Positions 1,533 through 49,341 of a stretch of 64,000 nucleotides of DNA are shown here, in pieces. The stretch spans positions 124,001 through 188,000 of the forward strand of contig QPMI01000533.1 in the NCBI GenBank assembly GCA_004431415.1. Direction: 5' to 3'. The notes below the pieces were generated by a model. That model had not been told where the DNA came from. It saw only the letters and a program-made list of their open reading frames with translations, and did not search any database. How positions within the stretch are numbered: position 1 is the stretch's first letter; every line of letters begins with the position of its first letter. The position numbers and the translations under genes are program-made. The DNA is from Cyanophora paradoxa CCMP329 (Eukaryota > Plantae > Glaucophyta).

Positions 1533-2297
1533 TATGGGGGGCACCTGACGAGCGGAAAGAAATATAATATATATATATATAAATGGGGAGACATTGAATT
1601 TCCGCATCACGTGTTAGGCCTGTAGCTAACTCCTGATCGTCACGCAGGTCTAGATCTGCGGCCTCTCAGAGTTTAACTAATCGCTAACTACAATCGCGGC
1701 AAGCTAGGCAAGCTACTGCTTACTGAGTCCACTGCTTACTGCCACTGCCGCTGCTTACACGAACACGAACGAACACGAACGACACGAACACGCATTATGC
1801 TGTGCGCCTGGTAATCATATATATCTAGTATATCGAGCAACGCAAGAATTGAACGTCGGAGACTGCGCATGCCCTGGTCTAAAAGGTGTCTGCAGAGAAG
1901 AATAAAAAAGCCTAGGTAGAAACCGTGAACCGTATCAGTTCCCAACTAGTACTAGTACTGAGCTGCACTGGATTATCTAAGATACGAAAATCGAAATGTC
2001 TTAGGCACACAGATCGCGGAGCCTCCGCAGAACGACTGCGAGTCCGACGACAACGAACGAGCACTGACACCGCGCTGGCCAGCGCGATATCGATTGCGGC
2101 GATCACCTCCAGAGCTGCTCCTAACGAGATCGAAGCAACGCAGGCCTAGGCAGCTACAGAAACCGAGTCGAAGCACTATATATATGGACATATACCGGCT
2201 TCCACCCGAACTAAGCTAGATACTGACGACAAGCGCACCAATAAAATATTATCGCTCACGATTGCAAGATGCGTATGCAATGAGAGAGAAGACGGAT

Positions 2298-11200: not shown

Positions 11201-14200
11201 TAAACTCCGCGTGAGGGCGGGGTCTGGGGGCAGCGGGCCCGGGCGCGATGCGAACCTGGAGGTGACTGCGACGGTCCAGGGCCAGCTTGGCGGGGCCAGC
11301 TGCAGGACGGCCCCGGTCCCGCCGGAATCGGAGCTCTCGGTCAGACACTTCGTCTCCCTGCGTCACCCAGTCACGATCGGTGGTTAAAGAAAGTCTTCGA
11401 GAGACTTCCAAACACGCACCAGATCGTGAAGTCGTTGAAAGGCTGCGCAGACGCAGTTTTGAATGAATGAAGACGGTAGGACTTGCGCGCTTATTCGAAA
11501 TTAAATGTGTCACCTGGATTTCGAGAGGAAACTTGAAGAGCTCAAACTCAAGGCCGGACTGAATGAGACGCGTCAGAAGAAAGGCGCCACCGTGCTTGAA
11601 GAAAGCTTAAGCGGCCGCGAACCGACTTGGGGGGCTTCTTTGCGATGGTGCTGAACTGAATGTTCATCGCGATGTATGGAATAATGCTGAAGGGGCGCGC
11701 TCAGCTGGGCTCGTCTCCAAATTTAAAGAAAGTGCAAGTCGCCGCACCCTGCCGCGATGCGGAAGTTGTTCACCCCTTTGCAGTCCCGACTGACCTACAA
11801 TCACGCGATGGACGGTGCCGCATTAGAGCCAGAGACGAGAATCGCGAAGAGACGAGAGAAGAGAGGTGGGAACCGGTGTCCAAATAAAGCCCACTCGGAA
11901 GGTCACGCCAGTCTGCAGGCCTGTGCACACACGGAGGGTTTGAATATTGAAAGGGCACAACCCCCCGACCCGGAGTCCAGCTGCAGTCTACTCACCCACA
12001 ACTTGAACACCTGCAAACCGAGCGCGCGCACATTGGATTAAACGTTTAATTCATTCGCGACAGGGCACGCGACCGCAGACATGCTCACCGTACGCGCCCG
12101 CGGTCAACTCAATCTCCGGCTCGAACAAGAGGTAGAATGCCAGGCCTAGCGGTAGAAACGCGATCACGCACATGGCAGCAGGGCTTCGGGGCGAATTAAA
12201 TGCATGCAAGCCACGCACTCAACTCGGGGGAGAAGGTCGGCGTCGGGACCTTGATGACAGGCGGCTTGTTGTTGTACCAGCCAACGTCTGGGGTCAAGCG
12301 ACCCCCAGAGAGCTTGGCGCCGGCCTGAACCCCGATCTCGATGCCAGCATCGAACACGGTCTGCGCGCAAATCATGCCCGCTTCGGGTGAGAATACGAAC
12401 ATGGCCCGGCTCACCGTGAGATCGAAATTGATCTCTCCAGAGAATCCTACTTTAATCTGAACAAGGAATAAGAAAATGCTTGAATACCCTTTGGCCTCTC
12501 ACGGACATTAATCTGCGACATAGGCAGGTTAGACAGACTAAACCCAGCGTGCATGGAAAGAAAGCCTATGTGTGCTCACGTTTGGCTGGAACGTGAAGAC
12601 GACGGGACCTGCGGGCGCGATTCAGACGAGCCGTGCCCCAGATTTGATTACCAAGCGAGTACTTGCACGCGCGAGCGGACCTGCAACGACCTGCTTTGCT
12701 GTGAACTGTTTGGTGAACACTTCTTTCAACACTTCGAGAGTGATTTCGATGTTGATTCGGAGCTCCCCACGAATGCGAGCTTTGGCCTCGGCAAAGACTG
12801 CGCGAGCAAAGCGTGTCGTCAATATACCTCCAGAGGCGCGACTCTGGGCGATCAATCAGGTGCGGGCAGATGGACCGTGGAAAGTGAACTCTCTGATATT
12901 GTAGTTAGATAGAACCAGCTTCATTTGTATGCCGACGCCACTGTAGAAGTAAAGCTGCTCAGGATCGAAGTACACCTGGGCCTTCACGTCGACACCGACG
13001 GAATTCGAGCCCAAGACTTCCTTCGCCCCTACAGACGCTTCGAATTCCAACCGAGGCCACTGCGCGAGAGACAAGACCGGTGTTCTCCATGAACACGCTG
13101 CGAGGTCGATCGAGTCTGCGAAGACAGGCACCTTCGCGGCCTGCCCTTTGAGGCGGTCGTCCCAGTTGAAAGAGACGCTGGCAATCGAGTTCCTGAGCGA
13201 CAGCTCGCACGATCCTGCACGGCTCGTCACGCGACCGGCGGCGCGGCCCCAGTCCAATGATCTCGTGGCCCGATATCGACTGCGACTCGCGCGCGCGATC
13301 GGGGCGAGAGTGCGCGCACCTGTCGCGCACTCGACGAGCGTGAGAATGGTGTTGATCGCCGAGACCGTTCTATCCACGGTCTTCGCGGCGATGTTCAGAC
13401 CAATGTTGACGACCGTGCCGGCTGCATTGACCACCCCCCTCAGCGGAGCGGTTAGGAAAGAGAGTTTGCCGCCCGTCAGGGAGTCGAACTGCCCGCAAAA
13501 TTAGACCAGTGATGGTTTCGTAAGCGGGCAGCGAGTTTAGGGAGAGAGCATGCCTTGTTGAGCCCCGTATTCACAGCCTTCACGGCGGTGTTGACCCCTT
13601 TCTGAGCGGCTGCGATGCCCGATTTGGCGGCGGAGCCGACTACGTTAACCGCCGTTTTCGTGACTTTCAGCGCCGATTGCTGTTCGCGAAGAAATTCAGG
13701 ATCGATCGCAGGCCTGATAATGATAGGAGTCGGCGTGGCTTACGATGCTTGCCAAGGCGCCCCCCCAGGCGGACTTCCCGATCGATGTCACGGCGCCCAC
13801 CGCCTTGTTCACAACTGCACCCGCGTTTAATTTCACTCACAGAAAGTCAAAGCATCATTTAATCGTGCGCGCAGTTTCCCGACCTTTTGTTACGGCCTTG
13901 CCGATTGCTTTGTGCACAAAGAGAAGCTTCCTCCCCCGAGAGGCCGGGTCCCTTGTCCGCGACGCTTTCTCCGCGTGATTCTCTGTGTATATGTTAATAC
14001 AAATGTCGTTGTGATGCTAATACGAAATTCTCTAAAGAAGACAGCAGCGAATTGGGTGGCCGAATTCGAATTCGAAGACGCACTGAGGCGATGAAACGAG
14101 TCCAGAACGCTCCGGTTTTGCGTTTGAGGCGACCTGGCCAGGGTCTCGAGCGAAGCGAACCTCGAGCTAAGGTCGCAGGAGAGTCACAAACGTGATAAGA

Positions 14201-15829
14201 AAATATAAAAGATACAAATGTCAAAAACCAGATGTCATAAAAGATATAAAGTCACGATACATTATGCAGATGTCAAAACAAGCCTAGGCCTAGGCCTGAC
14301 ACCCGGATCCGCGATTGCTATTTCAAGAAAGAAAGCGCGTGCGCACCGGAGGAGGTCGCGGGCGTCAAACTCGGATTGCGCCGCGTCGTCGTCGTCGTCG
14401 TCGCCGCCGTCGCCGTGGGCTTGGGCGTCGGGGCCGTCAGACGCGGGGCGCTTCCTCGCGGCGTGCGGCGCCCTCTTCGAGGAGCGCGAGCGCTCGTAGT
14501 AGTCCATCTCGAGGTGCTCGAAGATGTCGCCGAGGCCCGCCGCCTCGGCGCTGACCCGCGCGCACGTCCCGCGCAGCCGCTGCCCGCCGCTCGAGCTAGC
14601 GGCAAGCTCGCAGTCCGCCTCCGAGGCGACGCCCAGCACGCGGACCATCAGGCCGGCCAGCATCTCGTCCACCTCGCGAGTCTGGCGGCCGCGGGCCGGA
14701 ATCGACGCCGGCGCAGGGCAGCGCCTGCAAGAACGCGAGTGAGCCGAACGAAAATCTCCCCTGCCCAGCTGGCTGCTCTGCAAAATTTAAAAGTATGGAG
14801 GCGGGGGCGCACCACGTCTGGCCCCCGACCAGGATCCTGCAGAAAAAAGCACAGTTGAGAATTCGAAGAAAATAGTGCCCCCTGGGCAGCCCCCGCAGTG
14901 CTGGTGTCTAGAGACTGTGGCTGGTACTTAAGCTTCACCAAAAACAAATAGTGCAACAAGCGAATATTAGAATTAACGACGGGATCGAAAAACGATGTCT
15001 AAAATATTAAGCGGAAAAAGAAGTACTAGTAAATTTTCATTAGCATGATGTACACGAACGCATGCGCACGTTCCCGGGGCGATGGGCAGGCTTCGCCCTT
15101 TCTCCAGCAGAATATCAATGCGGTCGGGCGAGCCGGAGCAGTCGACGGCCAGAACCGCGGATTCAACGTCGAGGTCCACAACTGTTTAAGAGCCGGTTAT
15201 GGTCAGGAACGCTATTGAAAGGCACGTGCACAAGGAGTATAAATTTGATTATGATTTTAAAACCCGAATATACACGGGGGCGCGTCATGATCACCTGGTG
15301 CTTTCTGGACAGCGTTGAGAGTGTACCGCACTTGCAGCCCGGACAAATCCACGAAGTTCTTTGCGGTGTGCCAGTGGACGTGGCCTGTCGCGTGGTTCCT
15401 CGTCCGCTTCGCGTCCCAGCCAAGGAACCGATGAGGCGCCGCTCCGGTCGCCCGCCGCACGAAGGCCCCGGAGGGAGCTGCGGGCCGGGGCGTTCGCAGT
15501 GCTTAGCTAATAGCGAAGCTAGCGCTAGCTATAGTGCCGTCACATACAGACCGTCGGAAGTTTATGCAGGAGAGAATAGCGCGCGGGGCCGCGGATATAC
15601 AGATAAGCGCACCGGTACCTAGGGCTCCGAAGCCATCGTGCACGTGATAGCGAAGCGGCTGCGCTGTGGTCTCCGATTTGTGGCCAGAGGACTGCTTCGC
15701 CTCTCTGGCGTCGCACACGCGCGGCGCGGCCGAAGCCGCGAGGACCGCAACCGCAACGAGGAGGAGCGCCGGCACCGGCACGCGTCCGTATGCGGTCGCC
15801 GCCGCCGGCCGCTCGCGCCGCCGGCGCAT
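2298..15829 (-). CDS. Giant multi-exon secreted/cell-surface protein, copy L (signal peptide, FN3-like, PT linker, Kelch-like repeats, Pmp-like beta-helix, C-terminal hydrophobic/GPI-like signal)
   Basis: ATG 15829 MRRRRERP...[16 protein letters not shown]; FN3-like [11 protein letters not shown] and [15 protein letters not shown]; (TPSP)n linker; Kelch-like [24 protein letters not shown]; repeated GGA(V/I/L) and FxxN motifs ([26 protein letters not shown]); ends [32 protein letters not shown]. Could be more than one gene. Confidence 0.75.
9003..9195 (-). repeat. Coding Pro/Thr/Ser tandem repeat (TPSPSP linker)
   Basis: Repeated gggctgggcgtcggcgac / gggctgggcgttgcggat units; ORF 8732-9508 reads [25 protein letters not shown]...; shorter counterpart at ~40570-40725. 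Confidence 0.9.
14876..14944 (-). repeat. ~65-bp dispersed repeat, copy 2 (intronic)
   Basis: Reverse complement of 1467-1532; arm counterpart of 34762-34830. Confidence 0.85.
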
Positions 15830-16501
15830 CGTTAGCCGCGGGCTGTTAACGTCTCTCCGCGGCCCCCCTGCGCTGCCAGGCTGCACGCCGCGGCCGGGGC
15901 AAGAGGCTGGTTTGCTCTTTGCTAATATAACCGCTGAAGGGAAGCCGGGCGGCCGGATATATATCGATAGCGCAACCGCTGCGAGCCTGCGACGTATGTA
16001 CGTACGTAATAGTACGGTAATACTACGTATACTCCGCCGCCGCGCAACTACGTACGTACGTATACTACGGTATACTCGCCGCCTAGCCTTAGTAGCCAAG
16101 TAGTACGGAAGGGTCGGTGCGCGGCCGTGCGCCCACTGCGCCGGCGCCGCGGCCCGCGGCCGCGGGCTGCGGGCCGGCGCGGGTCCGGGGCCTCCGGGCG
16201 CGGCCGGCGGCCGCTCGCGATCGGACTCTATCATCGGAGGCCTAGGCTGTCCGACGGTCTCCGACCCTCGGACCGACGTCGACTCCGGATCTGAGTCTCC
16301 GATCGCGACGGTCGTTTCGGATCCGGGAAATCGGCGGGAATCCGCCGGGCCGCGGCCGGGCTCGGAGAGCCTCGAGCTCGGAGGCTGGTCGGAGCTGTCG
16401 TTCCGGGCTCGGAACCAGTTCGATTCCCAGTGACTCAGTGAAATTTCCCACTAGTACTCGTCGTCGTACTCGAAGTACCTTCTAAGAGGCCATTCCGAAG
16501 T

Positions 16502-32885: not shown

Positions 32886-33731
32886 GGTACCGGTACGTGG
32901 TACCTCCAACTAGGTACACCGAGTAGAACTCGAAGTTAATTTAAAAAACAATGTTCAGAAAAAAGGCTCTCGCCTCGAAGAAACGTCTCTAAGTAGCTTC
33001 TTCAAGTAGGAATCGGTGTTATTTTTCACTAAAGAGGTCTTGAAACTGAAGCCTCCGAGGCCTCCGAGGCTCCGCCCCTGACGGTCGGTCGTGCAGGGCC
33101 GGGCCCGGCGCGGGCCACACTGTGCCAGGCTGGCAGCTGAGGCTGCCAGCCCCACTGCCAGGGCCCAGCCGCCCAGGGAGTGGCAGCACTGGCAGGGACT
33201 CCTAGTAGTACTCGTCCTCGATATCCCGGAGTCCGTCGATATGCATGCATATATATATGTATGCATTTGCCCCATGGCCATGGGGTTCGCCGAGTCCGGA
33301 TCCGCCGGCGCCGGAGTCGAGGACTAGAGCGAGCGGACTCCGGGACTCTTAGATCTCCGGCCGGTGTCGGACTGCCAGGCTGTCACAGTGTGCCGCGCAG
33401 CCACGTACTGAGTGCATGCGCGAGCGGCGCTCCGGCCGCGCTGCTCTAGAACTGCCTACAGCCAGGCCTACTTGTACTGCCGATCCTAGGCCTAGATCCC
33501 ATCGGATAGCTTCGCCGATCGCGAGTTGCACGGCGGGGGAGTATACGTACGTATACTACGAACGTACGTCGCAGCGGTTGCGCTATCGATACATATCCGG
33601 CCGCCCGGCTTCCCTTCAACGCCGTGACGGTTATATTAGCTAAGAGCAAACCAGCCTCTTGCCCCGGCCCGGGCGTGCAGCCTGGCAGCGCCGGCGGGCC
33701 TCGGAGAGACGTTTACAGCCCGCGGCTAACG

Positions 33732-36700
33732 ATGCGCCGGCGGCGCGAGCGGCCGGCGGCGGCGACCGCATACGGACGCGTGCCGGTGCCGGCGCTCCTC
33801 CTCGTCGCGGTTGCGGTCCTCGCGGCTTGGGCCGCGCCGCGCGTGTGCGACGCCAGAGAGGCGAAGCAGTCCTCTGGCCACAGATCGGAGACGACAGCGC
33901 AGCCGGTCCGCTATCACGTGCACGATGGCTTCGGAGCCCTAGGAACCGGTGCGCTTATCTGTATATCCGCGGCCCCGCGCGCTATTCTCTCCTGCATAAA
34001 CTTCCGACGGTCTGTATGTGACGGCACTATAGCTAGCGCTAGCTTCGCTATTAGCTAAGCACTGCGAACGCCCCGGCCCGCAGCTCCCTCCGGGGCCTTC
34101 GTGCGGCGGGCGACCGGAGCGGCGCCTCATCGTTTCCTTGGCTGGGACGCGAAGCGGACGAGGAACCACGCGACAGGCCACGTCCACTGGCACACCGCAA
34201 AGAACTTCGTGGATCTGTCCGGGCTGCAAGTGCGGTACACTCTCAACGCTGTCCAGAAAGCACCAGGTGATCTTGACGCGCCCCCGGCCCGTGCATATTC
34301 GGTTTTAAAAACATCATACAAAGAATTAGATTCATACGTATACTCCTTGTGCACGTACCTTGCAAAGGCTTTCAATCGCGTTTCTGACCATGACCGGCTT
34401 CTTACAGTTGTGGACCTCGATGTTGAATCCGCGGTTCTGGCCGTCGACTGCTCCGGCTCGCCCGACCGCATTGATATTCTGCTGGAGAAGGGGCGAAGCC
34501 TGCCCATCGCCCCGGGAACGTGCGTTTATGTTTATATCACGCACATAAATAATAGTTATAACTAATTATAACCTCGTTTTTTACGCTCAATATTTTTTTC
34601 GAGCCGTGCTTTTATATTCAATCGTTGCATTTTGTCTTCTGCTAAACTGCGTGTACATCATGCTAATGAAAATTTACTAGTACTTCTTTTTCCGCTTAAT
34701 GTTTTAGACATCGTTTTTCAATCCCGTCTTTAATTCTAATATTCGCTTGTTGCACTATTTGTTTTTGGTGAAGCTTAAGTACCAGCCACAGTCTCTAGAC
34801 ACCAGCACTGCGGGGGCTGCACAGGGGGCACTATTTTCTTCGCAATTCTCAACTGTACTTTTTTCTGCAGGATCCTGGTCGGGAGCCAGGCTTGGTGCGG
34901 CCCCGCCTCCATATTTTCTCTAGAGCAGCCAGCTGGGCAGGGGAGATTTTCGTTCGGCTCACTCGCGTTCTTGCAGGCGCTGCCCTGCGCCGGCGTCGAT
35001 TCCGGCCCGCGGCCGCCAGACTCGCGAGGTGGACGAGATGCTGGCCGGCCTGATGGTCCGCGTGCTGGGCGTCGCCGCGGAGGCGGACTGCGAGCTTGCC
35101 GCTAGCTCGAGCGGCGGGCAGCGTCTGCGCGGGACGTGCGCGCGGGTCAGCGCCGAGGCGGCGGGCCTCGGCGACATCTTCGAGCACCTCGAGATGGACT
35201 ACTACGAGCGCTCGCGCTCCTCGAAGAGGGCGCCGCACGCCGCGAGGAAGCGCCCTGCGTCTGAGGGCTCCGCGACCGACGCCCACGGCGGCGGCGGCGA
35301 CGAGGACGACGACGCGGCGCAGTCCGAGTTCGACGCCCGCGACCTGCTCCGGTGCGCACGCGCTTTCTTTCTTGAAATAGCAGTCGTGGATCCGGGCGTC
35401 AGGCCCAGGCCTAGGCTTGGTTTGACATCTGTATACGTATAATGTATCGTGACTCGCCTGCGACCTCAGCTCGAGGTTCGCGTCGCTCGAGACCCTGTCC
35501 AAGTCGTCTCAAACGCACAACGGGAGCGTTCTGGACTCGTTCCATCGCCTCAGTGCGTTTCTGGTCTCATTTCGCTTCTTTCTTCTTGAGAGCACTTATC
35601 TCGTGATCGAAAATTTGCACACAGAGCATCTCGCGGAGAAAACGTCTCGGGGAAATGACCTGGTCGACGTCTATCGGGGCAGGAAGCTTCTCTTTTGTTG
35701 CAAAAGTTTCGTCAACATTGTGAAGAAAGGCGTAAATGGTCAGAACCGCGCGCGGGGTTCATTCTCTTATTTCCGCGAGCCGAACGCACGCGCAGTTGTG
35801 ACGAAGGCGGTGAGCTCCGTGACATCCATCGGAAAGTCCTTGTGGGGGAACGCCATGGCAGGCATCGTACGCCACGCCGACTCCTTTAATTACAAAAGGC
35901 CTGCGATCGATCCTGACTTTTTTGGGGAACAGCAAGCGGCAATGAAAGCCACGAAGACGGTGGTTAACAAAGCCGGCTCCGCCGCCTTATCGGGCATTGC
36001 AGCTGCGAAAAAGGGGGTCAACACCGCCGTGAAGGCTGTGAATACGGGGCTCAACAAGGCATGCTCTCTCTCTAAACTTGCTGCCCGCCCTAAAATCTAT
36101 CGCTAATGTAATTTTGAGGGCAGTTCGATTCCCTCACGGGCGGCAAGCTCAAATTCCTTACCGGCCCGCTGAGGGGCGTGGTCAATGTAGGTGGCTTGTT
36201 GATCAACACTGGTCTGAACATCGCCGCGAAGGCCGTGGATAAGACGGTCTCGGCGATCAACACCATCCTCACGCTCGTCGAGTGCGCGACAGGTGCGCTT
36301 TCACCACAATCGATATCTATCTCGAGCCATAAACAAACGAAATCTTGGCAACGGAACGGCACGCGTGACAAGACAAGCCGCGCAGGATCGTGCGAGCTAA
36401 CGCTCAAGAAAACGATTTCCAGCGTCTCGTTCAACTGGGACGATCGCCTCAAAGGGCAGGCGACAGAGGTGCCTCTCTCCGCAGACTCGATCGACCTCAC
36501 AGCGCGTTCATGGCGAACACCGGTCTTGTCTCTCGCGCAGTGGCCTCGGCTGGAATTCGAAGTGTCTGTAGGGGCCAACCAACTCATGGGTAAAAGTTCT
36601 GTCGGTGGCAGCGCGAAAGCCCAAGTCTACTTCGACCCCGAGCAGCTCTACTTCTACAGTGGCGTCGGTGTCCAGTTGAGGCTGGTTCTGTCGAATTACA

Positions 36701-39700
36701 ATATCAGAGAGTTCGCTTTCCACGGTCTGCCCGCTCCGCACCTGATCGCCCAGAGTACTAGTCGCGTCGCTGGTGTATATTGACGGCGCGATCCGTATTA
36801 TTGATATTATATGATATTATGATATTGATATATCCGTATTATTGATAGTATATGATATATATTATATACGTATATACTCGCGCCTTTGATATTATGTATT
36901 GACGGCGCGATCCGCCTGCGCCAGCCTTTGTTGAGGCCAAAGGGCGGCTTCGGGGAGAGCTCGGAATCAACATCGAAATCGCTCTCGAAGTGATGAGAGA
37001 GATCTACACCAAACAGTTCACAGCAAAGCAGGTCGTCGCAGGTCCGCTCGCGCCTACACGTACTCGCTTGGTAATCAAATCTCGGGCACGGCTCGTCTGA
37101 ATTCCGCCCGCAGGTCCCGTCGTCTTCACGTTCCAGCCAAGCGTGAGCAAACACAGGCTTTCTTTCCGTAAACACTGGTTTTTATCAGTCTAATCCGCCT
37201 ATGCCGCAGATTAATGTCCGTGCTCATGAGAGGCCCAAGGGTCTTCCAGCGTTTTCTTATTCTCTGCTCAGATTAAAGTAGGATTCTCTGGAGAGATCAA
37301 TTTCGATCTCAAGGTGAGCCGGGCCATGTTCGTATTCTCACCCGGAGCGGGTATGATTTGCGCGCAGACCGTGTTCGATGCTGGCATCGAGATCGGGGTT
37401 CAGGCCGGCGCTAAGCTCTCTGGGGGCCGCTTGACCCCCGACATTGGCTGGTACAACAACAAGCCGCCTGTCATCAAGGTCCCGACGCCGACCTTCTCCC
37501 CGGAGTTGAGTGCGTGGCTTGCATGCATTCGATTCGCCCTGAAGCCTCGCTGGCATGCGCGTGATCGCGTTTCCACTGCCAGGCGTTGCATTCTACCTCG
37601 TGTTCGAGCCGGAGATCGAGTTGACCGCGGGCGCGTACGGTGAGCATACCTGCGATCGCGTTCGCTATCCCGAATTAATTAAACGTTGACTTCAATGCGC
37701 GCGCGCTCGGTGTGCAGGCGTTCAAGCTGTGGGTGAGTGGAATGGACTCCGGATCCGGGGGTTGTGCCCTTGCAATATTCGAACCCTCCGTGTGTGCGCA
37801 GGCCTGCAAACTGGCATAACCTTCCGTGTGGGCTTCATCTGGACACCGGTTCCCACCTCTCGTCTCTTCGCGATTCTCGTCTCTGGGCTCTAATGCGGCA
37901 CCGTCCATCGCGCAATTATAGGTCAGTCGGGACTGCAAAGGGGTGAACAACTTCCGCATCGCAGCAGGGTGCGGCGCCCCGCCCCTTCTCTGGGGAACGA
38001 GCCCATCTGAGCGCGCCCCTTCAGCATTATTCCATACATCTCGATGAACATTCAGTTCAGCACCATCGCGAAGAAGCCCCCCAAGTCGGTTCGCGGCCGC
38101 TATTTTCAAGGGCGGTTGCGCCTTTCTGCTGACGCGTGTCTTTCAGGCCAACCTTGAGTTGGAGCTCTTCAAGTTTCCTATCGAAATCAAGGTATCATTT
38201 CTATCTTGTTTCTATCTCGTGCACAAGTTTTGCTGATGTTGATTGCTTATTTTCTGCGTCTGCGCAGCCTTTCAACGACTTTACGATCTGGTGCGTTTCG
38301 AAGTCTCTCCGAGGCTTCATTCGAACTGGCCGATCTTGACTGGGTAACGCAGGGAGACAAAGTGCCTGACCGACAGCTCTGGTTCCGGTGGCACGGGGGC
38401 CGTCCTGCAGCTGGCCCCGCCGAGCTGGCCCTGGACCGTCGCAGTCACCTCCCGGTTCACGCCGCGCCCGCTGCGCCCTTGCCCCGCCCTCACGCGGCGG
38501 CTCGCCCCTCCCTCCATCCAGATCGTCGAACACCATCTCGATCGGCTGGAAGCTGGATGCCGTCTCGCAGATGTCCGCCGCGGTGGCGATTTTCCGGGTG
38601 CGAACTCAACTTTCCTCTCACGCGGCCGTGTCCTCTCGAGGCTGCGGCCAGCTGAGGGTTCGTCCCGTGCGCAGATCCGCTACAACAGGCGAGGCGCTGG
38701 TGTCCTCGCGGCGGCACTGGCGCCGACCGCCTACGTCCCGGTCAACAGCCTCGTCGTCGATCCCGCCGTCGCCCGCAAGACGATCTTCCCGATCGCCACC
38801 ATGTTCGGCAAGAGCGTGTCGGGGTCCGTGTGCCCGAAGGGGTACGCGATGTGGGCGAGCTCCACCGCCAAGGCGGGCTACTGCCGTACCCTTCCGGCGG
38901 CGAGAGTCGATCAGGAGGCTGGCTCCGCGAACGTCTACACTGGAGCCGTTGCGAGCTCTGATCTGCTCACTACGTTTTCCTATACTATCCCGAACTTGCT
39001 CGCGCGGACGGGTGAGTTCCGCCCCGAGGAAATCTTAAAGCCTGCCTTTTAGTCCTTGAGCTTCTGTCTCACAGAGTACGAAATCGAGGTGGTCGCTCTG
39101 CGAGCCGACGGCTCCGAGCTCCGCTCGTCGACTGGGGCCTTGGTCGCCAAGACCCTCGGTGCGCATTCGAAGACGCTCGTGGTCCTGCGGGTCTGCGCGG
39201 CCGACGCGCGGATCTTCGCGCAGATCCTCCTCCCAACGCGCCCACCGCCGTGCGCTTCGTCTCGGCCCAGACCGACACGGCGAACAAGGGCAAGTTCTCC
39301 GTGACGCTGTCGTGGACGCCGGCAGCGTCCCAGCCCGCGGGCATCCCCCCGGTAGCCTTCTTCCAGGTGCCAGCGCCAGTCTTGCTTGCTCGGTCGTTCC
39401 GTTGCAGGCGCTGATCTTGAGGTCGCAACGCGCGCGCGTGCCCGAACCTCGCAGGTCGTCATCTCGCCCCCGCGGGCTGCGACGGTGCCGCCTTCGCCGT
39501 GCGCGGCGGGCACGCACCGGCTCCTGAACAGCGCGCCCACCGCGGCCTGCGTCCCGGACCTGGCGTCCCAAACGTCCACTTCGGATCTCCTGCTGAAGAG
39601 CTTCTCTCCGAGCGGCGCCCCTGCGGGAATCGTTTACGCCGACTGTGCGAACGCTTTAATTGTTTTGAGAGGCGCTTTTCAAACGCCGTGCACGTAACGC

Positions 39701-42700
39701 TTGCTTGCGCCCAGACTTTCCCACGCAGTCGGCCGGCACAACTTCGGCGACCATCCCCGGTCTCGAGCCCGGTACGCAGCGCTCAGCAGAGCGCGTGTGC
39801 TCCCTGCCGCGGACCGCGCCAAACGGACTTTGTTTGTCTCAGGCATCGTGTACTCGTTCCAAGTGATGGCGATGGGCGGACCCGTTTCGGACTCCGGATC
39901 CACCCAGCCGACCTCGGCGCCGCAGTATGCGGGCAGCCGTCCTTCGGATCGGCTCTTCGTGAAGACGCCCGGGTTCACGGACGGCGCCATCGTGCAGATC
40001 CTCGCGGCTTCGGGTGCCGGACCGGGGTTCCCGTACACGCTGTCGGTGACCAGGTCCAGCTGCCGCAATTTCGAGGCCTCGTGGACCCTGGGCGGCATCG
40101 CCTCGGTCGGCGGGGCCGCAATTCGGTCCCTTTCCGTGCAGGTCAGCCAGTCTCGCATTTCATTCTCTGCGAAGCACGATTTAATCTATGGACGCGTGCT
40201 CGTGCTCTGTTATTCGAAGGTGACCGCTGTGTACAAGGCGACTCCAACAGGGGCGATCGCGTTTCGATCGACGTTCCCAACTACCACTACGCTTACCCGC
40301 AAAGCCACGTACAAGGCAGAGGCGACCGACGTCGGCGGCGGCCGCCTGCAGATTTCCACCAACACCGCACCTCTTTCCACCATTTCCGGTTTCCTGAGTA
40401 AACTGAGGGGTACTGACCAATCCTTGTTCCCGACTACGTACCGGCCGGTGGGTGCCGTCACGTACACCTTCGTCCTCTTCGCGTACTCGGCCGTCGGCTC
40501 TGGCGACGTCTCGAACAGCACCGTCGTTCTCGACGCGGCGGAGCCGTGCGTCCCGGGGGCGGCGGCGGCGACGCCCACGCCGTCCCCCTCTCCGATCGCG
40601 GGCCAGACGCCCAGCCCATCGCCGACACCCGGCGAGTTGACGCCCGCCGGGCCCACCCCGACGCCCAGCCCCTCCGCAACGCCCAGCCCGACCCCAACCG
40701 CTTCCCCGACGCCCTCGCCCTCGCCGGTCGGACCCTTTATTTCGCCTCGCCTGTGGCGCGTTCTCGGCGGCCGCGTCCTTACGCGCCCCCGCGCCCGGTC
40801 CAGGTCCCCCACTGGGCCCAGCTGCTCTCGTTCGCGAAGATCACCACGGCCAGCGGAACTGTGCCTTCTTCTCGCGACACGCAGGTCTGCTGACCCGCAT
40901 TCGACGCCGCGTTCTGCACATACTGACGATATCGATTCTGCAGGGAGTCGGCGTGACATACGGAGGCGCTAACTATTTGTATGCTATGGTGCGTTCGTGC
41001 TGCGGAATGCAAGATCACTGCAGAGCAATGCCGGAACGCTACTGAATGCGTCGTGTTGATCAGGCGGGGGGCTGCCGGAATGAAATCGCCTATTCATCGC
41101 CTAGATGCGGCGCTGGTAATCACTACTACCGACTACGCCTCGACTCATGTGCGAAGTTGTTTTAATCCTGGGTCAAGTACCGGTGCTCACGCTCGATTTC
41201 ACAAACAGCGCCCGTCGCTTGGGAATCTGTAGCCTTTACTTCAGGCCTCGATATCGAAGACAAAGTGCGTTCATCAAGATCATATGCATTCTTCGACTCT
41301 GACTCGAATTCGTCACAAATCCGATCACAGCGGAAAGCGCAAGTGATGTTTGACGGAAACAAGTACATCTACTTTTACGGAGGTGCACTTGTACATCTCG
41401 AACTGCAACGCAAACACAAATTTCATGTTTCGACTCGCAGGCGCCGACTGGGATGACACGTGGTCACCCGGTACCCGCATGTCGCAAGCCGTTATACGCT
41501 TTGGTGCGCGTCTCGTATCGCGCGACACGTCGGTCCGTCGCGAGACACGCAATTGATATTGCGCTCTAGACGTCGAAACCCTTGTTGGAGAGGTTTTGAA
41601 TAGTGATGACGGCCAGTCGGGAAGAAACGGGCACTGCGCCGTGCGTTGCCATTTACTTTTAAATAGAAATATATTTTTGCAAACACTTTCGTCCTTTTAG
41701 GTCTTCAACGACGGAATCATCTACATGAGCGGCGGTTACCTTGGCTCGTTTTCGTTTTCGGATGGTGCGTAGCGAGCGCCAATTCACACGGACATTCGGC
41801 GCCTATTGATCTCTTGAGAACATTGTAACTCTAACGAACGGCACCGCCCAATCAGATCTGAAGAAATTCAACACGACCAGTAAAATCTGGACGACCCCAA
41901 TTTCAAGCAGCGATTTAACTAAACGGGAGGGTCACATTTGCGCCTTCATGAACGGCGCCGTGTGGAGCATTGGAGGCTATGGACACGAAACTAATCCCAA
42001 CTCGGGCACTATCATTAGTCCCATCCAATTCGCGTACGTGATCCTTATGCGCGATTCCCGTGCGCGACTCCAGCGCTTCTGTGCGCGCAGCTACGCGAAC
42101 GTCACCGCTTCTCCAGTAAGCTGGACGCTCCTCTCAGCAGCTCCTTTCAACGACGCGACAAAACTCCCGTCACCGCGCACGTTTCCCTGGTCCATGCGCA
42201 TTTCGCACATCCGGCGATTCTAAAAATCAAAACACGATTGGTATCTAATGCGTGACTGCAGGAACTGGGTTATGACCGTCAATTCCCTCCCAATATGGGT
42301 GCGATGCGCAGATGCGCAGATGGCTGCACAAAAGCCTTTGCAATTATGAGACGTTGCTAAATAGCGCTGCTAAGTAGTTTTTGAAAAAAAAAAAAGAAAG
42401 AGTAGGCTAAGTAGTTTTCCAAGTAGTGCTTACTTAGCTGCAGGTCATTGTTGGCGGCAAGGATTCTAGCTCGGTCTTATCCGACGCTTGGGTACGGAAT
42501 GGATATTCAGGCTCTGTACATGTTCTTTATACATTATGCCTGACTATGCTTGCGCGCCTGTGTTGGTTTGCGATCATGCTCATCCAGGCTTTCAAGCCAC
42601 GTGAGTGCCGCTGTATGCAGCATGGTACAGGACCCAGCTTACGTCAGCCTGTCGCAGATTGCATGGCGCGCTGCTCTTCCACAGGATGGGAGAAGATCAA

Positions 42701-45700
42701 TGTTACTGGAACGCTTCCTGACTCATACGGTTCGGATTCGCCTTCAGCAATTACTTATGCCGGACGCCTTAACATGCGCATGCTCCGTCCGACCGACGCG
42801 CAGGAGGCACAACTGGATATTTCCCGTCTTTGAAGCAAGCGTACAAGTTTGGCGGTAGGAAAGCATCGGGAACTAATGGCCCCGACATTGTGGGCGACTT
42901 GCACTACGCAAATGTGACAAGTGAGTCGCCATGCGGGACGCCGGGACGCCATGCGGTTTCCCAGCAACTTGGTTTATGTGGCTGCAGTTAGCGATGCGTG
43001 TCCGTGCGATTCATCGAGGCGCCGATCTTTTCTGCAAGGTTCGTCTCCGTCCGGGGCGGCTCGCGACCGCGATATCGCCAGACTCTCGGCTCACGCGTGC
43101 TCGTGGGCAGAGCCGGCGCTCGAGGGACCGGCGGACAGCGACGGGCTCCGCCCCGCCACGATCGGTCGCGCCCTGCTGCAGGAGGAAGGCGGTGAGTCCG
43201 TGCTGCACGCCCGTGCGCACTGCACAAGGCTTGGGCCGCATTCAAATTCCGCGCCCGCCGCAGCGCCGGACCCCGACTTCGTGACCACGGAAAACCCCGT
43301 GGACATGCGCTTGTCGGCGGCCGCCAACATCAGCAGCGGGCCGGAGGACCCGACCGCCGTCTTCAGCGCGGACGCGGAGCGCTACGAGAGCAACTGGGTC
43401 TTAGACCGGGAGGCGACCCTTGCCGCCCTCGACCCCGAGAGCCGCGCAACCCTCGAGGCCCTTTCCGGTACCCCCATTTCGTTTCATTTTTCAGATTAGT
43501 TTGCCGCGAGTGCCGGCAATGATCGCGTTTTCGCAGCGATGCGCGAGGGGCACATTCTGCAGTTCGCGCAGCTGCAGTCTCTGAACGAGTCGGGGGCGCG
43601 CTCCTACAACGGCCCGAACGGGACCATCATCATCGACCGGAGTGCGTGAACGCCGGAATCTTCGTCTTCTCGGATTTCATGCTCCCGGTGCTGAGCTAGA
43701 GCGGCCATCAGGTGTCGGGGGCTGCCCGCCTGACCGCAAGGTCGCGGGGACGCTGGGGAGAAACACGCTGCCGGCTCTGGCGAGCTGCCCGGCCACCCCC
43801 GACCAGACCAGCACGGCGCCGGCCGCCGGTTTCGACGTCGCGCTCTGCTCTATCATCGTGCCCATGGCGAACGCCGTGCAGGTGCTCCAGCGCCAATCTC
43901 ACTTCTCCGTAAAGCAAACGCCTGACCGCGCGCGAAAAGGTGTCGCTGAAAATCGCGAAGACGGGTCTCTACCGTTTCCGGGCGGACGACGAGACCGCCA
44001 ACTCTGCCAAATCCGTCGTCATCGATCTCCGCAGCGACGGATCGTGCGCGCCGCTCGCCTGCAACAGGCCCACCCCAGGTGCGCGCGCTGTGCTGGGCCT
44101 CTGGGCCATGGCGCTCGATCCCAATACCCCTTCGACTGCAGGCGGGGCGACCGAGCTGTGGGCGATCCTGTATGAGAACAGCACGGTAAATGTCAACGTT
44201 GCCGTCGTCGCCAGCAACGCGACCAGCACGGTCTGCCCGCCGTCGGACGCCGTCGTGCTCGACATCTCCCTCGAGACTCCGTACGACGAGCGCGTCTTCG
44301 TCGACGAGTCGCTCGGGGAGGTCGGGTTCAACCCCGAGGACCCGCTCCGCGACCCCGACACGCTCGACCTCTACTTCACCGACCTGGATGCCGCGCTCCG
44401 CTACGCCTACAACAGGACGCTGACGGCCGGCTCGGGCACTCCGCTTCAGGCGCGACCCCGCGCTGCTGTTGCTGCCCTGTCGCTGATGCTGTCGGTCTCC
44501 TCGAACAGATCGGCATCTTCTTGAAGCCAGATATGTATTATCAGAGCGTGAATGGCACCTGGGACCTCCCGGCTTCGCCCTCTGCGGCCGGGGCGCGCAT
44601 CTGGGTGAGTCGGCGGCATCCACGTATACATGGCTGCAAGCCGCGTCTTTGCAAACATACCTGAACCTTTTTCTTTTAGATTCGTTCCTTGAGCGGGCTT
44701 CGCCAGGGGACCAATTCCGCGTGCGTTACTGTGCTCTAGTCCAGCTCTGACTTTTGCCATCTGATGTGTCTCCGTGTGCAGCGAGGACACTCTCTTGACA
44801 TGTGGCGGCTTGGGTCAGGCCATCACGCTCTCGCACGCCTCGCCGCTGGTGTCGTTCCTCGGCGTCAGCATCGCCGCGTGCGGCACGGCGGAGAGTTCGT
44901 TCAGGGCCGACGAGCGGCTCTCTGGCGCCGCAATCTCCGTCGTCGGGCTGAAGAACATCGTGTTCAAGGTGCCCCGCTCTCGTTAGTCGAAGAATGCGCG
45001 CACGCGGGGCTCATCGCATTCCAGCACATCGTCTTCGTACGCAACGGCAACCACAACGCAAGCGTGGACGGGCGCGGAGGCGCCGTCGCGCTCCTGGGCG
45101 GGGCGTCAGCGACGTTTGACGGATGCATCTTCGTGCAGGTGCCGTCGGCCCTCCAGTTCTCAAATATTCAATTATTATCCTACTGCTGCGCTGGCCTGCA
45201 GCTGACTCAAAGCAGAACACCGCGCGCCGGGGCGGCGGCGCGGTCGCCATCCTCGACGGGAGCGAGGCCAGCTTCACGGACACGCTGTTTGCGTCCAACG
45301 CGGCCCCGGTCGGCGGCGCCGTGCTCGTCTCCGGCGCCCGCACGGCTTCCTTCTCTGTGACGGCATTCCACGTGAGACGCCCCCCAAAGGTCCTCCGAAT
45401 TGTCCCTGGGGTGTTCTGAGTGGCTCTGCGCCTTTGCGACCGCAGAACAACTCGGCCCTTCCGGGCCCACCCGACTCGCCGGAGGAGGACGCGGGATGGG
45501 ACGCTGCTCTCGAATTTAAAGACCCGTCGGACGTCAAGAACTGGATGGGCGGCGCCGTGGCGATCCTGGGCGCGACAGAGACCGTGCAGTTCGACGTGGC
45601 CATCTTCGAAAGCAACAGCGCTCTCTTCGGAGCGGCCATCGCGACCGCGAGCCGCGTGTCCGTCACGCGCTCGCAGCTGTCGGGCTCTAGAAAAAATTCG

Positions 45701-47772
45701 CAATCTGGGCCTGCGGGAGGCGCCATCTGGGTCCATTCAACGGAGGCCCGCATCGAGCTGACGCAGTTCGACGGCAACGAGCAGGCGCTCCCGCTGGCCG
45801 CGGGGGGTATCACCTGCAGCGGCGCCGGCGCCTCCCTTTCCGTCTACGCTTCGACCTTCGCCGATAACTGGGGCATGTTCGGCGGCGCGGCGCGCGTCTT
45901 CCACGGGTGCAGGGCGAACTTCACCCTGTGCTCGTTCACCGGTCCGCCCGCTCTGTCATCGTAGCTTACGATTGCGTTGGTTCCGCCTCTGCGGTCTCAC
46001 GTCCCCTGCGAGCAGACAACGTGGCGCTGGCCGGAGGAGCCGTGATGGTCGGGCAGATGGACGCGGCGGCTGGGGGGGCGCAGGCGGCCTCGACCTGGGC
46101 GATGTTCGACCAGGTCGAGTTCCGCAGAAACTACGCAGGCTTCCCCGCCGAAGAGGAGGCGACCGAGTACGGTCTCGACCCGACGACGGGCTGGGGCGGC
46201 GCGCTCGCCATCTTCGCCCCCGTCGACGGCGCCGTGCCCATCTCGGGCTGCCTCCTCGCGGAGAACCACGCGGCCGCGGGCGGCGGCCTCTTCGCCAACA
46301 CGTCCGTCAGCATCGACGGCGACACGATCTTCTACGACAACCACGCCGGCTTCCCTTACTTCGACGGGCACGCGGAGCGCGACGTCCAGATCGGCGGCGG
46401 CGCCCTCCTCTCGCACGCGGCCGCGTCGAGCCGCATCGCGGGGGCCCTCTTCGCGAAGAACACGGCGCGCGGCGCGTTCGGCGGCGGCCTCGCGCTGCTC
46501 GGCGGGACGGTCGACCTCCGCGGCCCGCGCTTCCTTCAGAACTCCGTCCTCGGTGCCGACAGCGCGGGCGGAGGTCCGCACACGCTCCCGGCGCCGTGCG
46601 GCGCGCTGCTGTTGCTTTCGCCCTAGGCCTGACTGGGCGTGGCAGGCCTCTTCGGGGATGGCGTCGCCTTCGTCGGAGAGCCCTCCTTCATCGCCAGCAA
46701 CAACGTCGCGGATGGCCCGGTCCGTCTATACGCGTGATCCGTGGCCTCGCGCAGGAAGGCTCCAGCGAGGGCACGATTGCTTACGCCCCTGCGGGACCGC
46801 GCAGTTCCACAACGTCTATCTGATGTCGACCGGCGGCAACTCGAGCGCGGGCGGCGGCGGCGCGGCCGACGGGGCGCGCGGCGTGGCCAAGAGCTGCTCG
46901 GCGTGCTCGCTCTGCCAGACGTGCGAGATCGCGACGGGCCGCTGCAAGTTCCCCGCGGACTTCGGTGCGCCGCGCCGCCCCCGCCGTCGACGAGGAGAAG
47001 CTGAGCGGTGCGGGGCGGGCGGGCAGACGCGTGGTGCGAGTTCATCGGCGGGTGCACGCCGGAGGCCTGCCCCTTCGTTTCCGCCGGCACGGCCCGCTTC
47101 GACGAGTCCAACGGCCTCCGCTCCATCCGCGTCGAGCTGGACTCGACCTCCGGGTTGTCCACCGGCGGCTCCGGAAACTGCTCCGCCCTCTTCGTCGAGG
47201 ACACCATCAAGATGCTCGGCGAAGGTGGGAAATTTCGGAAATTGAGCCCATTACGAAAAGGCTGCCCAACGTTAATTAACCGCCGTTCGCTCGCCAGGTG
47301 CGACGTGCACGCTCAGCTCCGCCTCCGGCGCGGGGCGGCGGCGGCGGCAGGCGCTGCAGACATCGGCGGGCCTCCTCATCGTGCAGCTCGGCAAGGCATT
47401 CTCGGTCGAGCCCGGCGCCGTCCTCGGCCTGCGGCTCGAAATCCTCCCCGAGCGGTTCCGCTCCGTCTCCAACGAGGCGGTCATCGAGATCGAGCAGGCG
47501 CGCCAGCGCCCCGCACTCGGCTATGCTCTGCTTTCGGCTGACCGCGCTGCTCGCCGCCCGCGCAGACGTCGATCCCGGTGCAGCAGATGAAGGAGCAGCT
47601 GGCGCGGACCAACCGCACCATCACGGCCGAGCTGGAGCAGCGGTTCGCGAGCTTCCAGGCGCCCCTGCTCATCTCCTCCTCGTCGCCCTCCGGGATCTCC
47701 TCCGCCGCCGTCGTCGCCACCGCCGCCTGCGCGCTCCTCGCCGCCGCGGCGCTCCTCTTCGGCAGACTCTAA
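33732..47772 (+). CDS. Giant multi-exon secreted/cell-surface protein, copy R
   Basis: ATG 33732 MRRRRERP...[16 protein letters not shown]; same domain order as copy L; Kelch-like YIYFYGG, REGHICAFMNGAVWSIGGY, VIVGG, WEKINVTGTLP; ends [32 protein letters not shown] (47772). The exonic indels I checked against copy L are in frame. Confidence 0.75.
34762..34830 (+). repeat. ~65-bp dispersed repeat, copy 3 (intronic)
   Basis: TTTTTGGTGAAGC...CACCAGCACTGCGGGGGCTGCACAGGGGGCA. Confidence 0.85.
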
Positions 47773-49341
47773 ATCCGTCTTCTCTCTCACTGCATACGCA
47801 GTGAGTGAGCGATAAAATTTATTTATACGTGTTTCGTCAGTCTAGAGTATACTTAGTTCGGGTGGAAGCCGGTATATGTATATAGTGCTTCGACTCGGTT
47901 TCGAATTCTACAGCTAGCGCTACCTGCATTCCTGGATCCGGAGCAGCCCGGCCGTGGAGGAGCCGTGGAGATGATCGCTGCAATCGATATCGCGCTGGCC
48001 AGCGCAGTGTCAGTGCTCGCGACCGTTCGTTCTCGTCGGACTTGCGGTCCGGTCGTTCTGCGCCGGCCAGCGCCAGCGCAGCATCCGATAATCCACGCTC
48101 GCTGTTGCCGTCGCCGGGCTCGCGATCGTTTTGTGGAGGCTTTTCGATTTGTGTATCGCATCTTCGCATTGCAGCATTATGATTAGTCCAATTATGTATC
48201 GTACATGATCCAGCACAGCCTAGTTAGGAACCAATCTCTTCAGCGGTTTCTATCTATGCTGTTTTGTTTCGTCTCCGCAACTAGCTTCTAAGCGCAGTTT
48301 CAATTCTTGCTTTATATATAAAATTACCATTTGCTCTTATATAAAATTGCCACTTGCACGGCTTAATTATATATATATGTAATGCGTGTTCATGTCGTTT
48401 CTCGCCTTGAACGGTAGCTTGCCAAGTTGCTTTTGCGTGATGCTAGGTATCGATTAGCGATATCGATTAGCTACAGGCGACAGACCGTCGGACATGCGTG
48501 ACCCTATACCGCGATAGCGATCGAGGCCAAAGGTTTCTGAGTACGTATACCGTAGTACGCGATTTGGAAATTCAACATTAAAATTCGCCCCATTTCCCGC
48601 AGCTGCAGTATGTGCCACGTGCAACTGCAAGGCCCCTTAGGCGGAAGTAAAGCAAGCAGTCACAGGGCGGCGACAAGGGAATTCGAATATTAATGTTGAG
48701 TCGGGCGCGCCCTCGGCCCCGCCGCGAAACATGTGCACGTGTATATATTACGTGATCGCGACTGAGAATATTGATTTATATTCGACATTAATATTTAAGC
48801 ACGTGCACCGTCCTGTCAGGCTGGACTTGAGACTTGATGGGACAGAGGGACTCAGTGACTCGAGGGGGGGGGAACCCTTAATGGCGAGAGGGGGGAACTT
48901 CGTAACCCCTGATGCATTTGGCCACGGGGGACGCAGAATTACGAAGGGATGTGCATGTGCACGTGCGCGCATGCTGGTGGCCATTAAATATATATTGTGG
49001 TACGGGTGGCCATGGGGTTGGGTTGGAGGGAAGGGCAGGGGGGGCGGGAAGGCGGACTCCGGGAGGCCGCGGGGAGGGGGGGAACGGGGGGCGGAGGCCG
49101 CGGGAAGCGGGGGAGGGGGGGAGGGGGGAGGGAGGTGGCGAAGGGGCCCCCGGGGCGGAGGGGAGGAGGGGGTTGCGGGGGTGTATAGGATAGGAGCGGG
49201 GGCTGGAGCTTGAGGGCCGGGGCCGCGGTCACTCGCGGAGCTGCCGGAGGGCGGTCGGAGGGGTGAGGGGTGGGGAGGGGGGGGGGGGGGGGCGGAAGCC
49301 GCGGGGAGGGGGGAGGGGGAGGGAGGGGAAGGGAACCGCGG

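Follow-up and report, generated by a model that had tools for sequence, protein, structure and literature searches.

Related systems and the Cyanophora locus

Large palindromes and inverted duplications, such as the ampliconic palindromes of the primate Y chromosome, undergo gene conversion from arm to arm. Region-limited concerted evolution, where conversion homogenizes paralogs apart from an island kept divergent by selection or heterology, has reportedly been modeled by Innan and by Teshima & Innan. The opsin and RH gene pairs are examples. In the plant receptor-like protein and NLR clusters of the Cf-4/Cf-9 type, variation lies mostly at LRR residues exposed to solvent, and patches are exchanged among many members. 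The trypanosome VSG, Borrelia vlsE, and Neisseria pilE/pilS systems need silent donor banks, and their donor and recipient segments are near-identical. No paper was found on Kelch families or on gene conversion in the Cyanophora nucleus.

The window analyzed here is a stretch of 64,000 nucleotides of Cyanophora paradoxa DNA. It contains a 14-kb inverted duplication with one paralog per arm, in head-to-head orientation. The arms (L and R) are as follows.

2026-16049, - strand: L arm, with the whole L paralog inside (start about 15829, stop about 2298); from blastn, inverted-repeat pairs, and global-alignment mapping
33524-48062, + strand: R arm, with the whole R paralog inside (ATG at 33732, stop at 47770-47772); from blastn and inverted-repeat pairs

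The two paralogs are 85-99% identical, or roughly 90% alike, with the exception of one internal block. High identity extends across the introns and the flanking noncoding DNA and is not limited to the exons. The R paralog begins with a signal-peptide-like sequence at its ATG, and a C-terminal hydrophobic helix precedes its stop codon. The best explanation is that both genes encode a large type-I surface protein, with a probable order of signal peptide, unnamed N-terminal region, beta-sandwich-like exon, Pro/Thr linker, six-blade Kelch propeller, PMP-like repeats, and membrane helix. Word searches of protein libraries with the scaffold open reading frames returned either no relatives or matches to the PT repeat only, and an AlphaFold model of scaffold exon 46069-46569 by itself had a pLDDT of 33.

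As in the primate Y palindromes, two inverted arms with a unique spacer are near-identical through noncoding DNA, and perfect tracts exceed the expectation for uniform divergence. The Cyanophora arms differ in being only 85-99% identical and patchy, with an internal 2.3-kb segment that is wholly excluded, and conversion would here be deduced from a single genome. The locus shares with the known cases of region-limited concerted evolution a constant part of low dS beside a far older island in one gene pair. Its island, however, is a whole intron-bounded domain with intron turnover, and divergence there changes in a step instead of forming a shouldered peak. A repeat-built binding domain that differs between clustered paralogs otherwise exchanging sequence recalls the Cf-4/Cf-9-type clusters, but here the domain is a Kelch propeller, only two copies were encountered, and the block itself shows no patchwork. 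The constant scaffold and exchangeable cassette bounded by conserved sequence that one may picture for this gene resemble the VSG, vlsE, and pilE systems, whereas no donor is present in the 64-kb window and the two cassettes are anciently diverged.

Boundaries of the divergent block

The L arm was compared with the reverse complement of the R arm by blastn. L 2026-6885 matched R 48062-43115 at 89% identity, and L 9044-16049 matched R 40714-33524 at 77-94%. The alignment was blank between L 6884-9044 and R 40715-43116. In a global alignment, the identity of 0.83-0.93 fell at R 40714/L 9045 to about 0.5, which is the level of a forced alignment, and recovered at R 43117/L 6883. The features at and around the block are listed below.

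40715-43116, + strand: R divergent block (Kelch cassette), 2402 nt, GC 0.53; from the blastn blank, the identity profile, boundary alignments, and bridging DNA contigs
6884-9044, - strand: L divergent block (Kelch cassette), 2161 nt, GC 0.56; from the blastn blank, the identity profile, and boundary alignments
40560-40726, + strand: R Pro/Thr/Ser linker, with which the upstream scaffold exon ends; L homology extends as far as 40714, and the predicted donor is at 40727 (GTCGGA)
8975-9200, - strand: L Pro/Thr/Ser linker, about 66 nt longer than that of R; predicted donor GTGCGT at 8974
43111-43191, + strand: first scaffold exon past the R cassette; homology to L restarts at 43117, with a dS of 0.17 over 24 codons
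6809-6895, - strand: first scaffold exon past the L cassette; homology to R restarts at 6883

The left edge of the block lies within the PT repeat, about 12 nt ahead of the R donor, and the right edge lies 7-13 nt into the next scaffold exon, such that both edges are within about 12 nt of exon edges. The PT repeat on one side and the conserved exon start on the other are candidate recombination ends flanking the cassette. The sequence-only reading had claimed that R 40730-43119 and L ~6880-9000 barely align as DNA, that the boundaries are sharp with one of them in the PT repeat, and that the block is lower in GC. The alignments, the identity profile, and the GC contents of 0.53 (R) and 0.56 (L), with 0.63 for the flanking sequence, bear out each of these statements.

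That reading had also named an assembly chimera at the boundaries as a possible source of the pattern. Independent DNA runs yielded contigs covering 40537-43326 and 40714-43326 that are identical to the window there. Because these contigs bridge both R boundaries, the R block is not an assembly chimera. The depth rises from about 52 in the R cassette, whose contig is at single-copy level in two runs, to about 100 in the parts collapsed from L and R. Some contigs match R up to 43438 or up to 40344 and then enter sequence absent from the window; these loose ends hint at further related loci elsewhere. No RNA contig covers the region, and none of the runs recorded as RNA contains the stretch. The two RNA-labelled runs gave a match to the PT repeat only, which is no proof of silence.

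Kelch modules in the two copies

The exon models are predictions from splice sites, open frames, and homology between L and R. In our own models the open chains comprise 13 exons (L) and 15 exons (R), within which the Kelch exons are the following.

40804-42971, + strand: R Kelch exons K0-K9, predicted, 14 exons, 387 aa; an open chain in which all acceptors are AG and all donors GT, with introns of 58-145 nt
R exons 1-7 of 14, + strand: 40804-40884, 40944-40988, 41064-41148, 41209-41264, 41331-41382, 41441-41503, 41570-41640
R exons 8-14 of 14, + strand: 41701-41764, 41856-42189, 42262-42298, 42444-42491, 42588-42600, 42685-42729, 42804-42971
6957-8907, - strand: L Kelch exons K0-K9, predicted, 12 exons, 373 aa; an open chain in which all acceptors are AG and all donors GT except for GC at 8844
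L exons 1-6 of 12, - strand: 8907-8845, 8774-8730, 8567-8498, 8418-8311, 8251-8186, 8127-8057
L exons 7-12 of 12, - strand: 7973-7907, 7839-7722, 7657-7481, 7425-7271, 7205-7136, 7060-6957
42299-42443, + strand: intron of R only, 145 nt, with in-frame stops and a length that is not a multiple of three; L is continuous here
42588-42600, + strand: candidate 13-nt microexon between two introns of R only (96 and 84 nt); from splice sites and homology to L
7658-7721, - strand: intron of L only, 64 nt, whose retention would break the frame; R exon 41856-42189 runs through this place without interruption

Two of the donors in the R chain are weak. The scaffold-exon indels between L and R are all multiples of three and both cassette chains are open, and for these reasons both copies look functional.

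The two blocks had been described as encoding homologous repeats despite their unlike DNA, and the peptide matches found by tblastx are indeed colinear. The joined L and R models are 38% identical in amino acid sequence over 349 positions (blastp E 2.6e-59), with a Smith-Waterman score of 502 versus 39 ± 6 for shuffles. The R model contains six Kelch units, about 45-60 residues long, in each of which a hydrophobic strand is followed by a Gly-Gly doublet and an aromatic/Trp strand is conserved. In L the doublet is found in four units, and two units are degenerate at homologous places. When Pfam was scanned exon by exon, the best match was that of L exon 7424-7272 to PF24681 (E 7e-6, 25.9 bits against a cutoff of 50). 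Further exon-level matches were weak: one to PF01344 (E 0.008) and one of R exon K7 to PF24681 (E 0.008). These weak profile matches, together with the repeat pattern, suggest that the block encodes a Kelch propeller. A library-wide profile search, in which the query was an alignment of exon K7 of R with exons K7a and K7b of L, gave 94 matches with E <= 1e-3, with several repeats matched in each. All were generic multi-Kelch proteins (best 76 bits) from libraries that contain no Cyanophora proteins, and the search is thus silent on Cyanophora donors. The top matches belong to Kelch/beta-propeller Pfam families and sit on a bacterial-type metagenome contig. By local blastp, the joined models are 25-38% identical to the 94 retrieved proteins.

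Ten of the 16 intron positions in the cassettes are common to L and R in identical phase, which shows that both cassettes go back to a single ancestral module within this gene structure. The other six are copy-specific, just two of them unambiguously. An introner-like origin of the copy-specific introns was considered and rejected, as no similarity was found among the introns or with the rest of the window. A single 174-nt exon of L (7252-7425) had been proposed to correspond to a stretch of R split by introns 42299-42443, 42492-42587, and 42601-42684. The three R introns stand on their AG/GT sites and homology to L. The L exon does not stand as drawn, since splicing at its donor would put the next Kelch exon out of frame; the corrected exon is 7425-7271 (155 nt), and its donor, GTGCGT, is placed homologously to that of R. 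Intron 42299-42443 must be spliced because of its length and its in-frame stops. Introns 42492-42587 and 42601-42684 are multiples of three and stop-free within a single open frame (42438-42830), and read-through of both is therefore possible; these two introns and the 13-nt exon between them are candidates for either splicing or read-through.

Origin of the divergent block and its implications

The cassette has reached saturation at synonymous sites (pS 0.75, with a dN of 0.65), and 65% of the four-fold sites under conserved residues differ. The introns within the block are unalignable between L and R. Over 1056 codons of the scaffold exons, dS is 0.116 and dN is 0.048. The sequence-only reading had proposed comparing dS in the cassette and scaffold, and the two are clearly unequal. 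GC3 is low in both cassettes and far below that of the scaffold exons. The flanks contain 11 perfect tracts of 91-188 nt (the longest being 188, 155, 146, 143, and 131), whereas simulated tracts had a mean of 46 nt and a 99.9th percentile of 81. The value of dS ranges from 0.00 to 0.33 per scaffold exon and from 0 to 0.75 among scaffold segments overall. The older strata include the following.

35453-36780, + strand: scaffold exons of the N-terminal part, with intermediate divergence: dS 0.28-0.42 overall and up to 0.75 in pieces (0.28-0.75 across the strata, omega 0.2-0.4), GC3 0.62-0.74
40138-40438, + strand: another, small variable patch, located in the scaffold exon that precedes the linker and corresponding to L 9572-9323; identity 62-76%, dN = dS = 0.44 (40138-40340), with a 51-nt indel

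By these values, the mosaic of the flanks reflects a continuum of coalescence times and not a single duplication date, and differences in constraint between exons and introns contribute to it. GC-biased conversion was considered as well. The correlation between identity and GC across windows (rho 0.51) is confounded by exon/intron differences and is lost in the unbiased test on windows of open reading frames (rho 0.12, p 0.41, with imperfect frames); the correlation is not robust.

We think it fairly probable that these are old paralogs homogenized by arm-to-arm gene conversion that is unable to cross the Kelch heterology island. Two old head-to-head paralogs would sit in a palindrome-like inverted duplication, where repeated conversion would maintain 85-99% identity over the greater part of the 14-kb arms and also in their introns. 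The Kelch module of about 2.3 kb would have left conversion long ago, through selection for two different propellers or just an early structural change, and would have diverged in place. It would now be too different for heteroduplex formation, so that conversion tracts would end at its edges; this would account for a step-like boundary both within the PT repeat and where the next exon starts. Several points run against this explanation. The identity profile is a step and not the gradual decay expected around a selected site, and the two edges, a low-complexity PT repeat and a conserved exon, would also fit the ends of a family-wide recombination. The part of exon-intron constraint in the mosaic, the loss of the GC correlation, the loose contig ends, and the purely predicted state of the exon models count against it as well. 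Two copies give no tree, and divergence in place is inseparable from an old import. Such an import, which we regard as possible but rather unlikely, would have followed a recent duplication or a last full homogenization. The whole propeller of one copy and its flanking introns would have been replaced from a distant family member by ectopic recombination or conversion, in an event ending in the PT repeat and the conserved next exon. The closeness of both boundaries to exon edges, the recombination-prone repeat at one of them, the common intron positions expected of a donor from the same family, and the loose contig ends at 43438 and 40344 all speak for it. A single swap, however, does not explain the age strata of the flanks together with the fresh perfect tracts, and the unusually low GC3 is found in both cassettes and not in just one. 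No donor was found, as a third cassette is absent from the 64-kb window, and the single-copy depth of the R cassette contig excludes a near-identical copy in those strains. The earlier suggestion that the cassette is anciently diverged and protected from homogenization is thus supported by its saturated synonymous sites beside a scaffold dS of 0.12 with perfect tracts and age strata; the companion suggestion of a swap among distant family members has gained no positive evidence. We are more doubtful still that Kelch propellers are exchanged as intron-bounded cassettes within a larger Cyanophora surface-protein family, with the PT linker and the next exon as recombination ends.

Surface-exposed recognition domains frequently evolve fast, and the small patch with equal dN and dS could be taken as a sign that, after a recent duplication, the Kelch block evolved tens of times faster than its flanks by targeted mutagenesis and/or extreme diversifying selection. 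With unalignable introns and saturated synonymous sites, however, the excess of change goes beyond amino acids, and between two and six intron positions differ. We know of no eukaryotic mechanism that would mutate a block of 2.3 kb yet leave its edges defined to about 10 nt, and this explanation is hardly credible. It is very improbable, too, that the block is an assembly chimera or that its Kelch parts are decaying pseudo-exons with over-fitted exon chains. The lack of an RNA contig in two RNA-labelled runs, the low GC3, the GC donor at L 8844, and the two weak R donors would be in keeping with artefact or decay. Against this, exact contigs from independent runs bridge both boundaries in R, the block for which reads were checked, and chains of 13-15 exons are open with ten phase-matched common junctions. 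The hallmarks of a propeller are kept at 38% identity (E 3e-59), and unconstrained decay would not preserve them.

The locus is probably a tidy but precedented case of region-limited concerted evolution, and a clean natural example of copy-correction between duplicated genes that stops at a domain boundary. It also provides material on intron turnover: two to six intron differences are specific to one lineage, and the candidate 13-nt microexon is among them. A whole six-blade Kelch propeller would have been kept different for a very long time on an otherwise common protein body. The Kelch cassette may be a ligand-binding specificity module, and the two propellers may bind different partners; if so, a single maintained scaffold would serve the alga for two specificities. 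If the same boundaries recur in more family members, this would be domain-level shuffling of recognition heads in glaucophytes, of which, to our knowledge, nothing of the kind has been described. Should cassette exchange prove true, a constant stalk with swappable heads would constitute a germline combinatorial recognition system in a glaucophyte.

Divergent block within the inverted duplication

The left arm of the inverted duplication (L, 2026-16049) was found to match the reverse complement of the right arm (R, 33524-48062) in blastn pieces of 77-94% identity, and the two arms are separated by a spacer of 17.5 kb. Each arm contains one large multi-exon gene, and the L and R genes are transcribed in diverging directions:

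33732 (ATG) to 47770-47772 (stop), plus strand: R gene, with a signal-peptide-like start and a stop directly after a hydrophobic helix
about 15829 to about 2298, minus strand: L gene, the counterpart of the R gene

The sequence of the window is GC-rich with many short introns; the published C. paradoxa assembly has a GC content of 67.6%, with 9.2 introns per gene that average 86 bp (PMC6704402). Indels within the scaffold, the exons of both genes outside the Kelch-encoding block, are all multiples of three, and thus both copies look functional. No significant domain was found in the scaffold with a Pfam profile scan. Its C-terminal half contains sub-threshold Chlam_PMP repeat matches, with GGA-type motifs recurring at 45120-46623 (PF02415, Chlamydia polymorphic membrane protein repeat; 19.2 bits, cutoff 20.6). 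These are possibly interesting in light of reports of chlamydial gene transfers in C. paradoxa (PMC6704402).

No blastn similarity was detected between L 6884-9044 and R 40715-43116, and a forced global alignment gave about 50% identity within this block versus 0.83-0.97 on both sides, with step-like edges at left and right. The left edge is at R 40714/L 9045, where homology stops within the Pro/Thr/Ser repeat that closes the upstream scaffold exon (the PT linker), about 12 nt upstream of the predicted R donor. At the right edge, R 43117/L 6883, homology returns 7-13 nt into the following scaffold exon. In essence, then, the divergent block consists of the exons lying between two introns, together with the two introns themselves. 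The GC content of the block is 0.53 (R) and 0.56 (L) versus 0.63 for the flanks. A sequence-only reading had described cassettes that barely align as DNA, have lower GC, and end sharply, once in the PT repeat, and all of this is borne out.

The same reading had named an assembly chimera as a possible source of the pattern. Contigs from two independent DNA runs cover R 40537-43326 and 40714-43326 with zero differences, the contig depth of the R block (about 52) is half of that at collapsed L/R places (about 100), and all variant letters reported on the R flanks match the L copy. The R block is thus real and single-copy, with no assembly chimera.

Kelch modules and predicted introns

The exon chains were built by coordinates from three-frame views, colinear tblastx matches, and splice sites:

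40804-42971, plus strand: 14 predicted R Kelch exons; the first shared scaffold exon comes next
8907-6957, minus strand: 12 predicted L Kelch exons; the first shared scaffold exon comes next
42588-42600, plus strand: candidate 13-nt microexon, predicted, between introns of 96 and 84 nt, neither of which shifts the frame or contains a stop

Both chains are open throughout. The acceptors are all AG, the donors are mostly GTGCGT-like, and the predicted introns (55-162 nt) are consistent with the published mean. The exception among the donors is that of the first Kelch exon (K0) in L, predicted as GC at 8844-8843 (minus strand), where the R counterpart has GT at 40885; either the intron is of the GC-AG type or the site has been weakened. 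The skipping of K0 would preserve the frame in L (63 nt) and R (81 nt).

The predicted products of 387 (R) and 373 (L) amino acids contain six blade-like units with the usual Gly-Gly doublets. The single-exon Kelch profile matches are weak (best PF24681, E 7e-6, under the gathering score), and a library-wide profile search returned multi-Kelch proteins exclusively. The support for a six-blade Kelch propeller is good but not formal; the joined (spliced) protein models were used in local scripts alone. The two modules are 38% identical over 349 positions (blastp E 2.6e-59), with a local score of 502 versus 39 ± 6 for shuffles, and the identity is fairly even across the Kelch exons (25-62%).

The two chains share ten intron positions, all in the same phase; four further positions are found only in R and two only in L. 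Two of the six copy-specific introns, R 42299-42443 (145 nt) and L 7721-7658 (64 nt), are unambiguous, since the frame would be lost if they were retained. The remaining four, both introns beside the 13-nt microexon among them, have lengths divisible by three and contain no stop, so that read-through is possible in principle; around 42588-42600 it would interrupt a blade strand midway with about 30 extra residues. The three R introns proposed from sequence alone were recovered in these models, as was the corresponding L exon, although its end was moved from 7252 to 7271 because the donor there is homologous to that of R and the next Kelch exon stays in frame.

Age of the block and of its flanks

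By the Nei-Gojobori method, dS is 0.116 and dN is 0.048 for 1056 codons of clear scaffold exons. In the cassette, pS is 0.75, which is saturated, dN is 0.65, and 65% of four-fold sites differ even under identical residues. Cassette and scaffold dS, whose equality would have spoken against ancient divergence, are clearly unequal, which makes the block older than the most recent common ancestor of its flanks by an order of magnitude or more.

The flanks are themselves mosaic. L and R are perfectly identical over eleven tracts of 91-188 nt, where a uniform model gives a longest tract of 46 nt on average and 81 nt at the 99.9th percentile; these tracts are still improbable under the lower, exon-only divergence. 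Those of 131-188 nt are candidates for the latest conversion events:

33945-34132: perfect tract
34922-35076: perfect tract
46357-46502: perfect tract
44831-44973: perfect tract
35125-35255: perfect tract

Over their 5' 1.6 kb, the arms share 97-99% identity. The dS of scaffold exons ranges from 0.00 (79 codons, 34993-35250) up to 0.33, and two further regions are more diverged:

35453-36780 (L about 14185-12850): N-terminal exons of intermediate age, dS 0.28-0.42 as a whole, with pieces reaching 0.75
40138-40438 (L 9572-9323): small variable patch in the scaffold exon, shortly before the PT linker, 62-76% nucleotide identity

For the N-terminal exons, omega is 0.2-0.4 in the 36118-36780 pieces, and neither a Pfam match nor relatives in a protein word search were found. 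At 40138-40340 the small patch has dS = dN = 0.44 and a 51-nt (17-codon) indel, and the exon is 91-93% identical on both sides of it. Such a spread of coalescence times is expected if gene conversion between the arms has been repeated and patchy, but not from one recent duplication.

Most scaffold exons of the gene have a GC3 of about 0.9, but the value falls to 0.61-0.68 for the cassette, to 0.62-0.74 for 35453-36780, and to 0.53-0.58 for the small patch, and these are the parts that have diverged most. Expression-linked codon bias cannot vary inside one transcript, and thus recombination history, as GC-biased conversion, is a natural suspect for these differences, whose cause is unexplained. 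Identity and GC correlate across windows (rho 0.51, confounded by exon/intron differences), and ORF windows with imperfect frames showed no link (rho 0.12).

Origin of the two propellers

We consider it probable that these are old paralogs homogenised by arm-to-arm conversion. Conversion would keep them alike wherever homology suffices, and the propeller module would have left the exchange long ago, now acting as a heterology barrier at which conversion tracts end. Its departure may reflect an advantage of having two different propellers, or a drop in conversion caused by early indels and changes in introns. The age contrast and the mosaic flanks support the earlier suggestion of a cassette protected from homogenisation.

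The import of one module from a third family member, with breakpoints in the PT repeat and in the conserved exon, is a less likely origin that deserves some weight. The block edges coincide with exon edges, and contigs (runs X6 and X16) match R up to 43438 and 40344 and continue into sequence absent from the window, so that further related loci probably exist elsewhere in the genome. However, no donor cassette was found within the 64-kb window, the R block is at single-copy depth, the flanks contain several age strata, and the odd low GC3 is common to both modules. Artefact or decay, for a block whose R copy is read across by independent runs, is very improbable, and hyper-fast local evolution of a block saturated at synonymous sites slightly more so.

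The observation of the divergent block is solid. Close donors, the defining feature of donor-cassette systems, are lacking within the 64 kb. The L/R pattern works like region-limited concerted evolution, as in palindrome arms and gene pairs with a protected island. It also resembles plant receptor clusters, in which a conserved body carries a variable recognition domain. Judged by the usual role of propellers, the two genes may provide two ligand specificities on one maintained scaffold.
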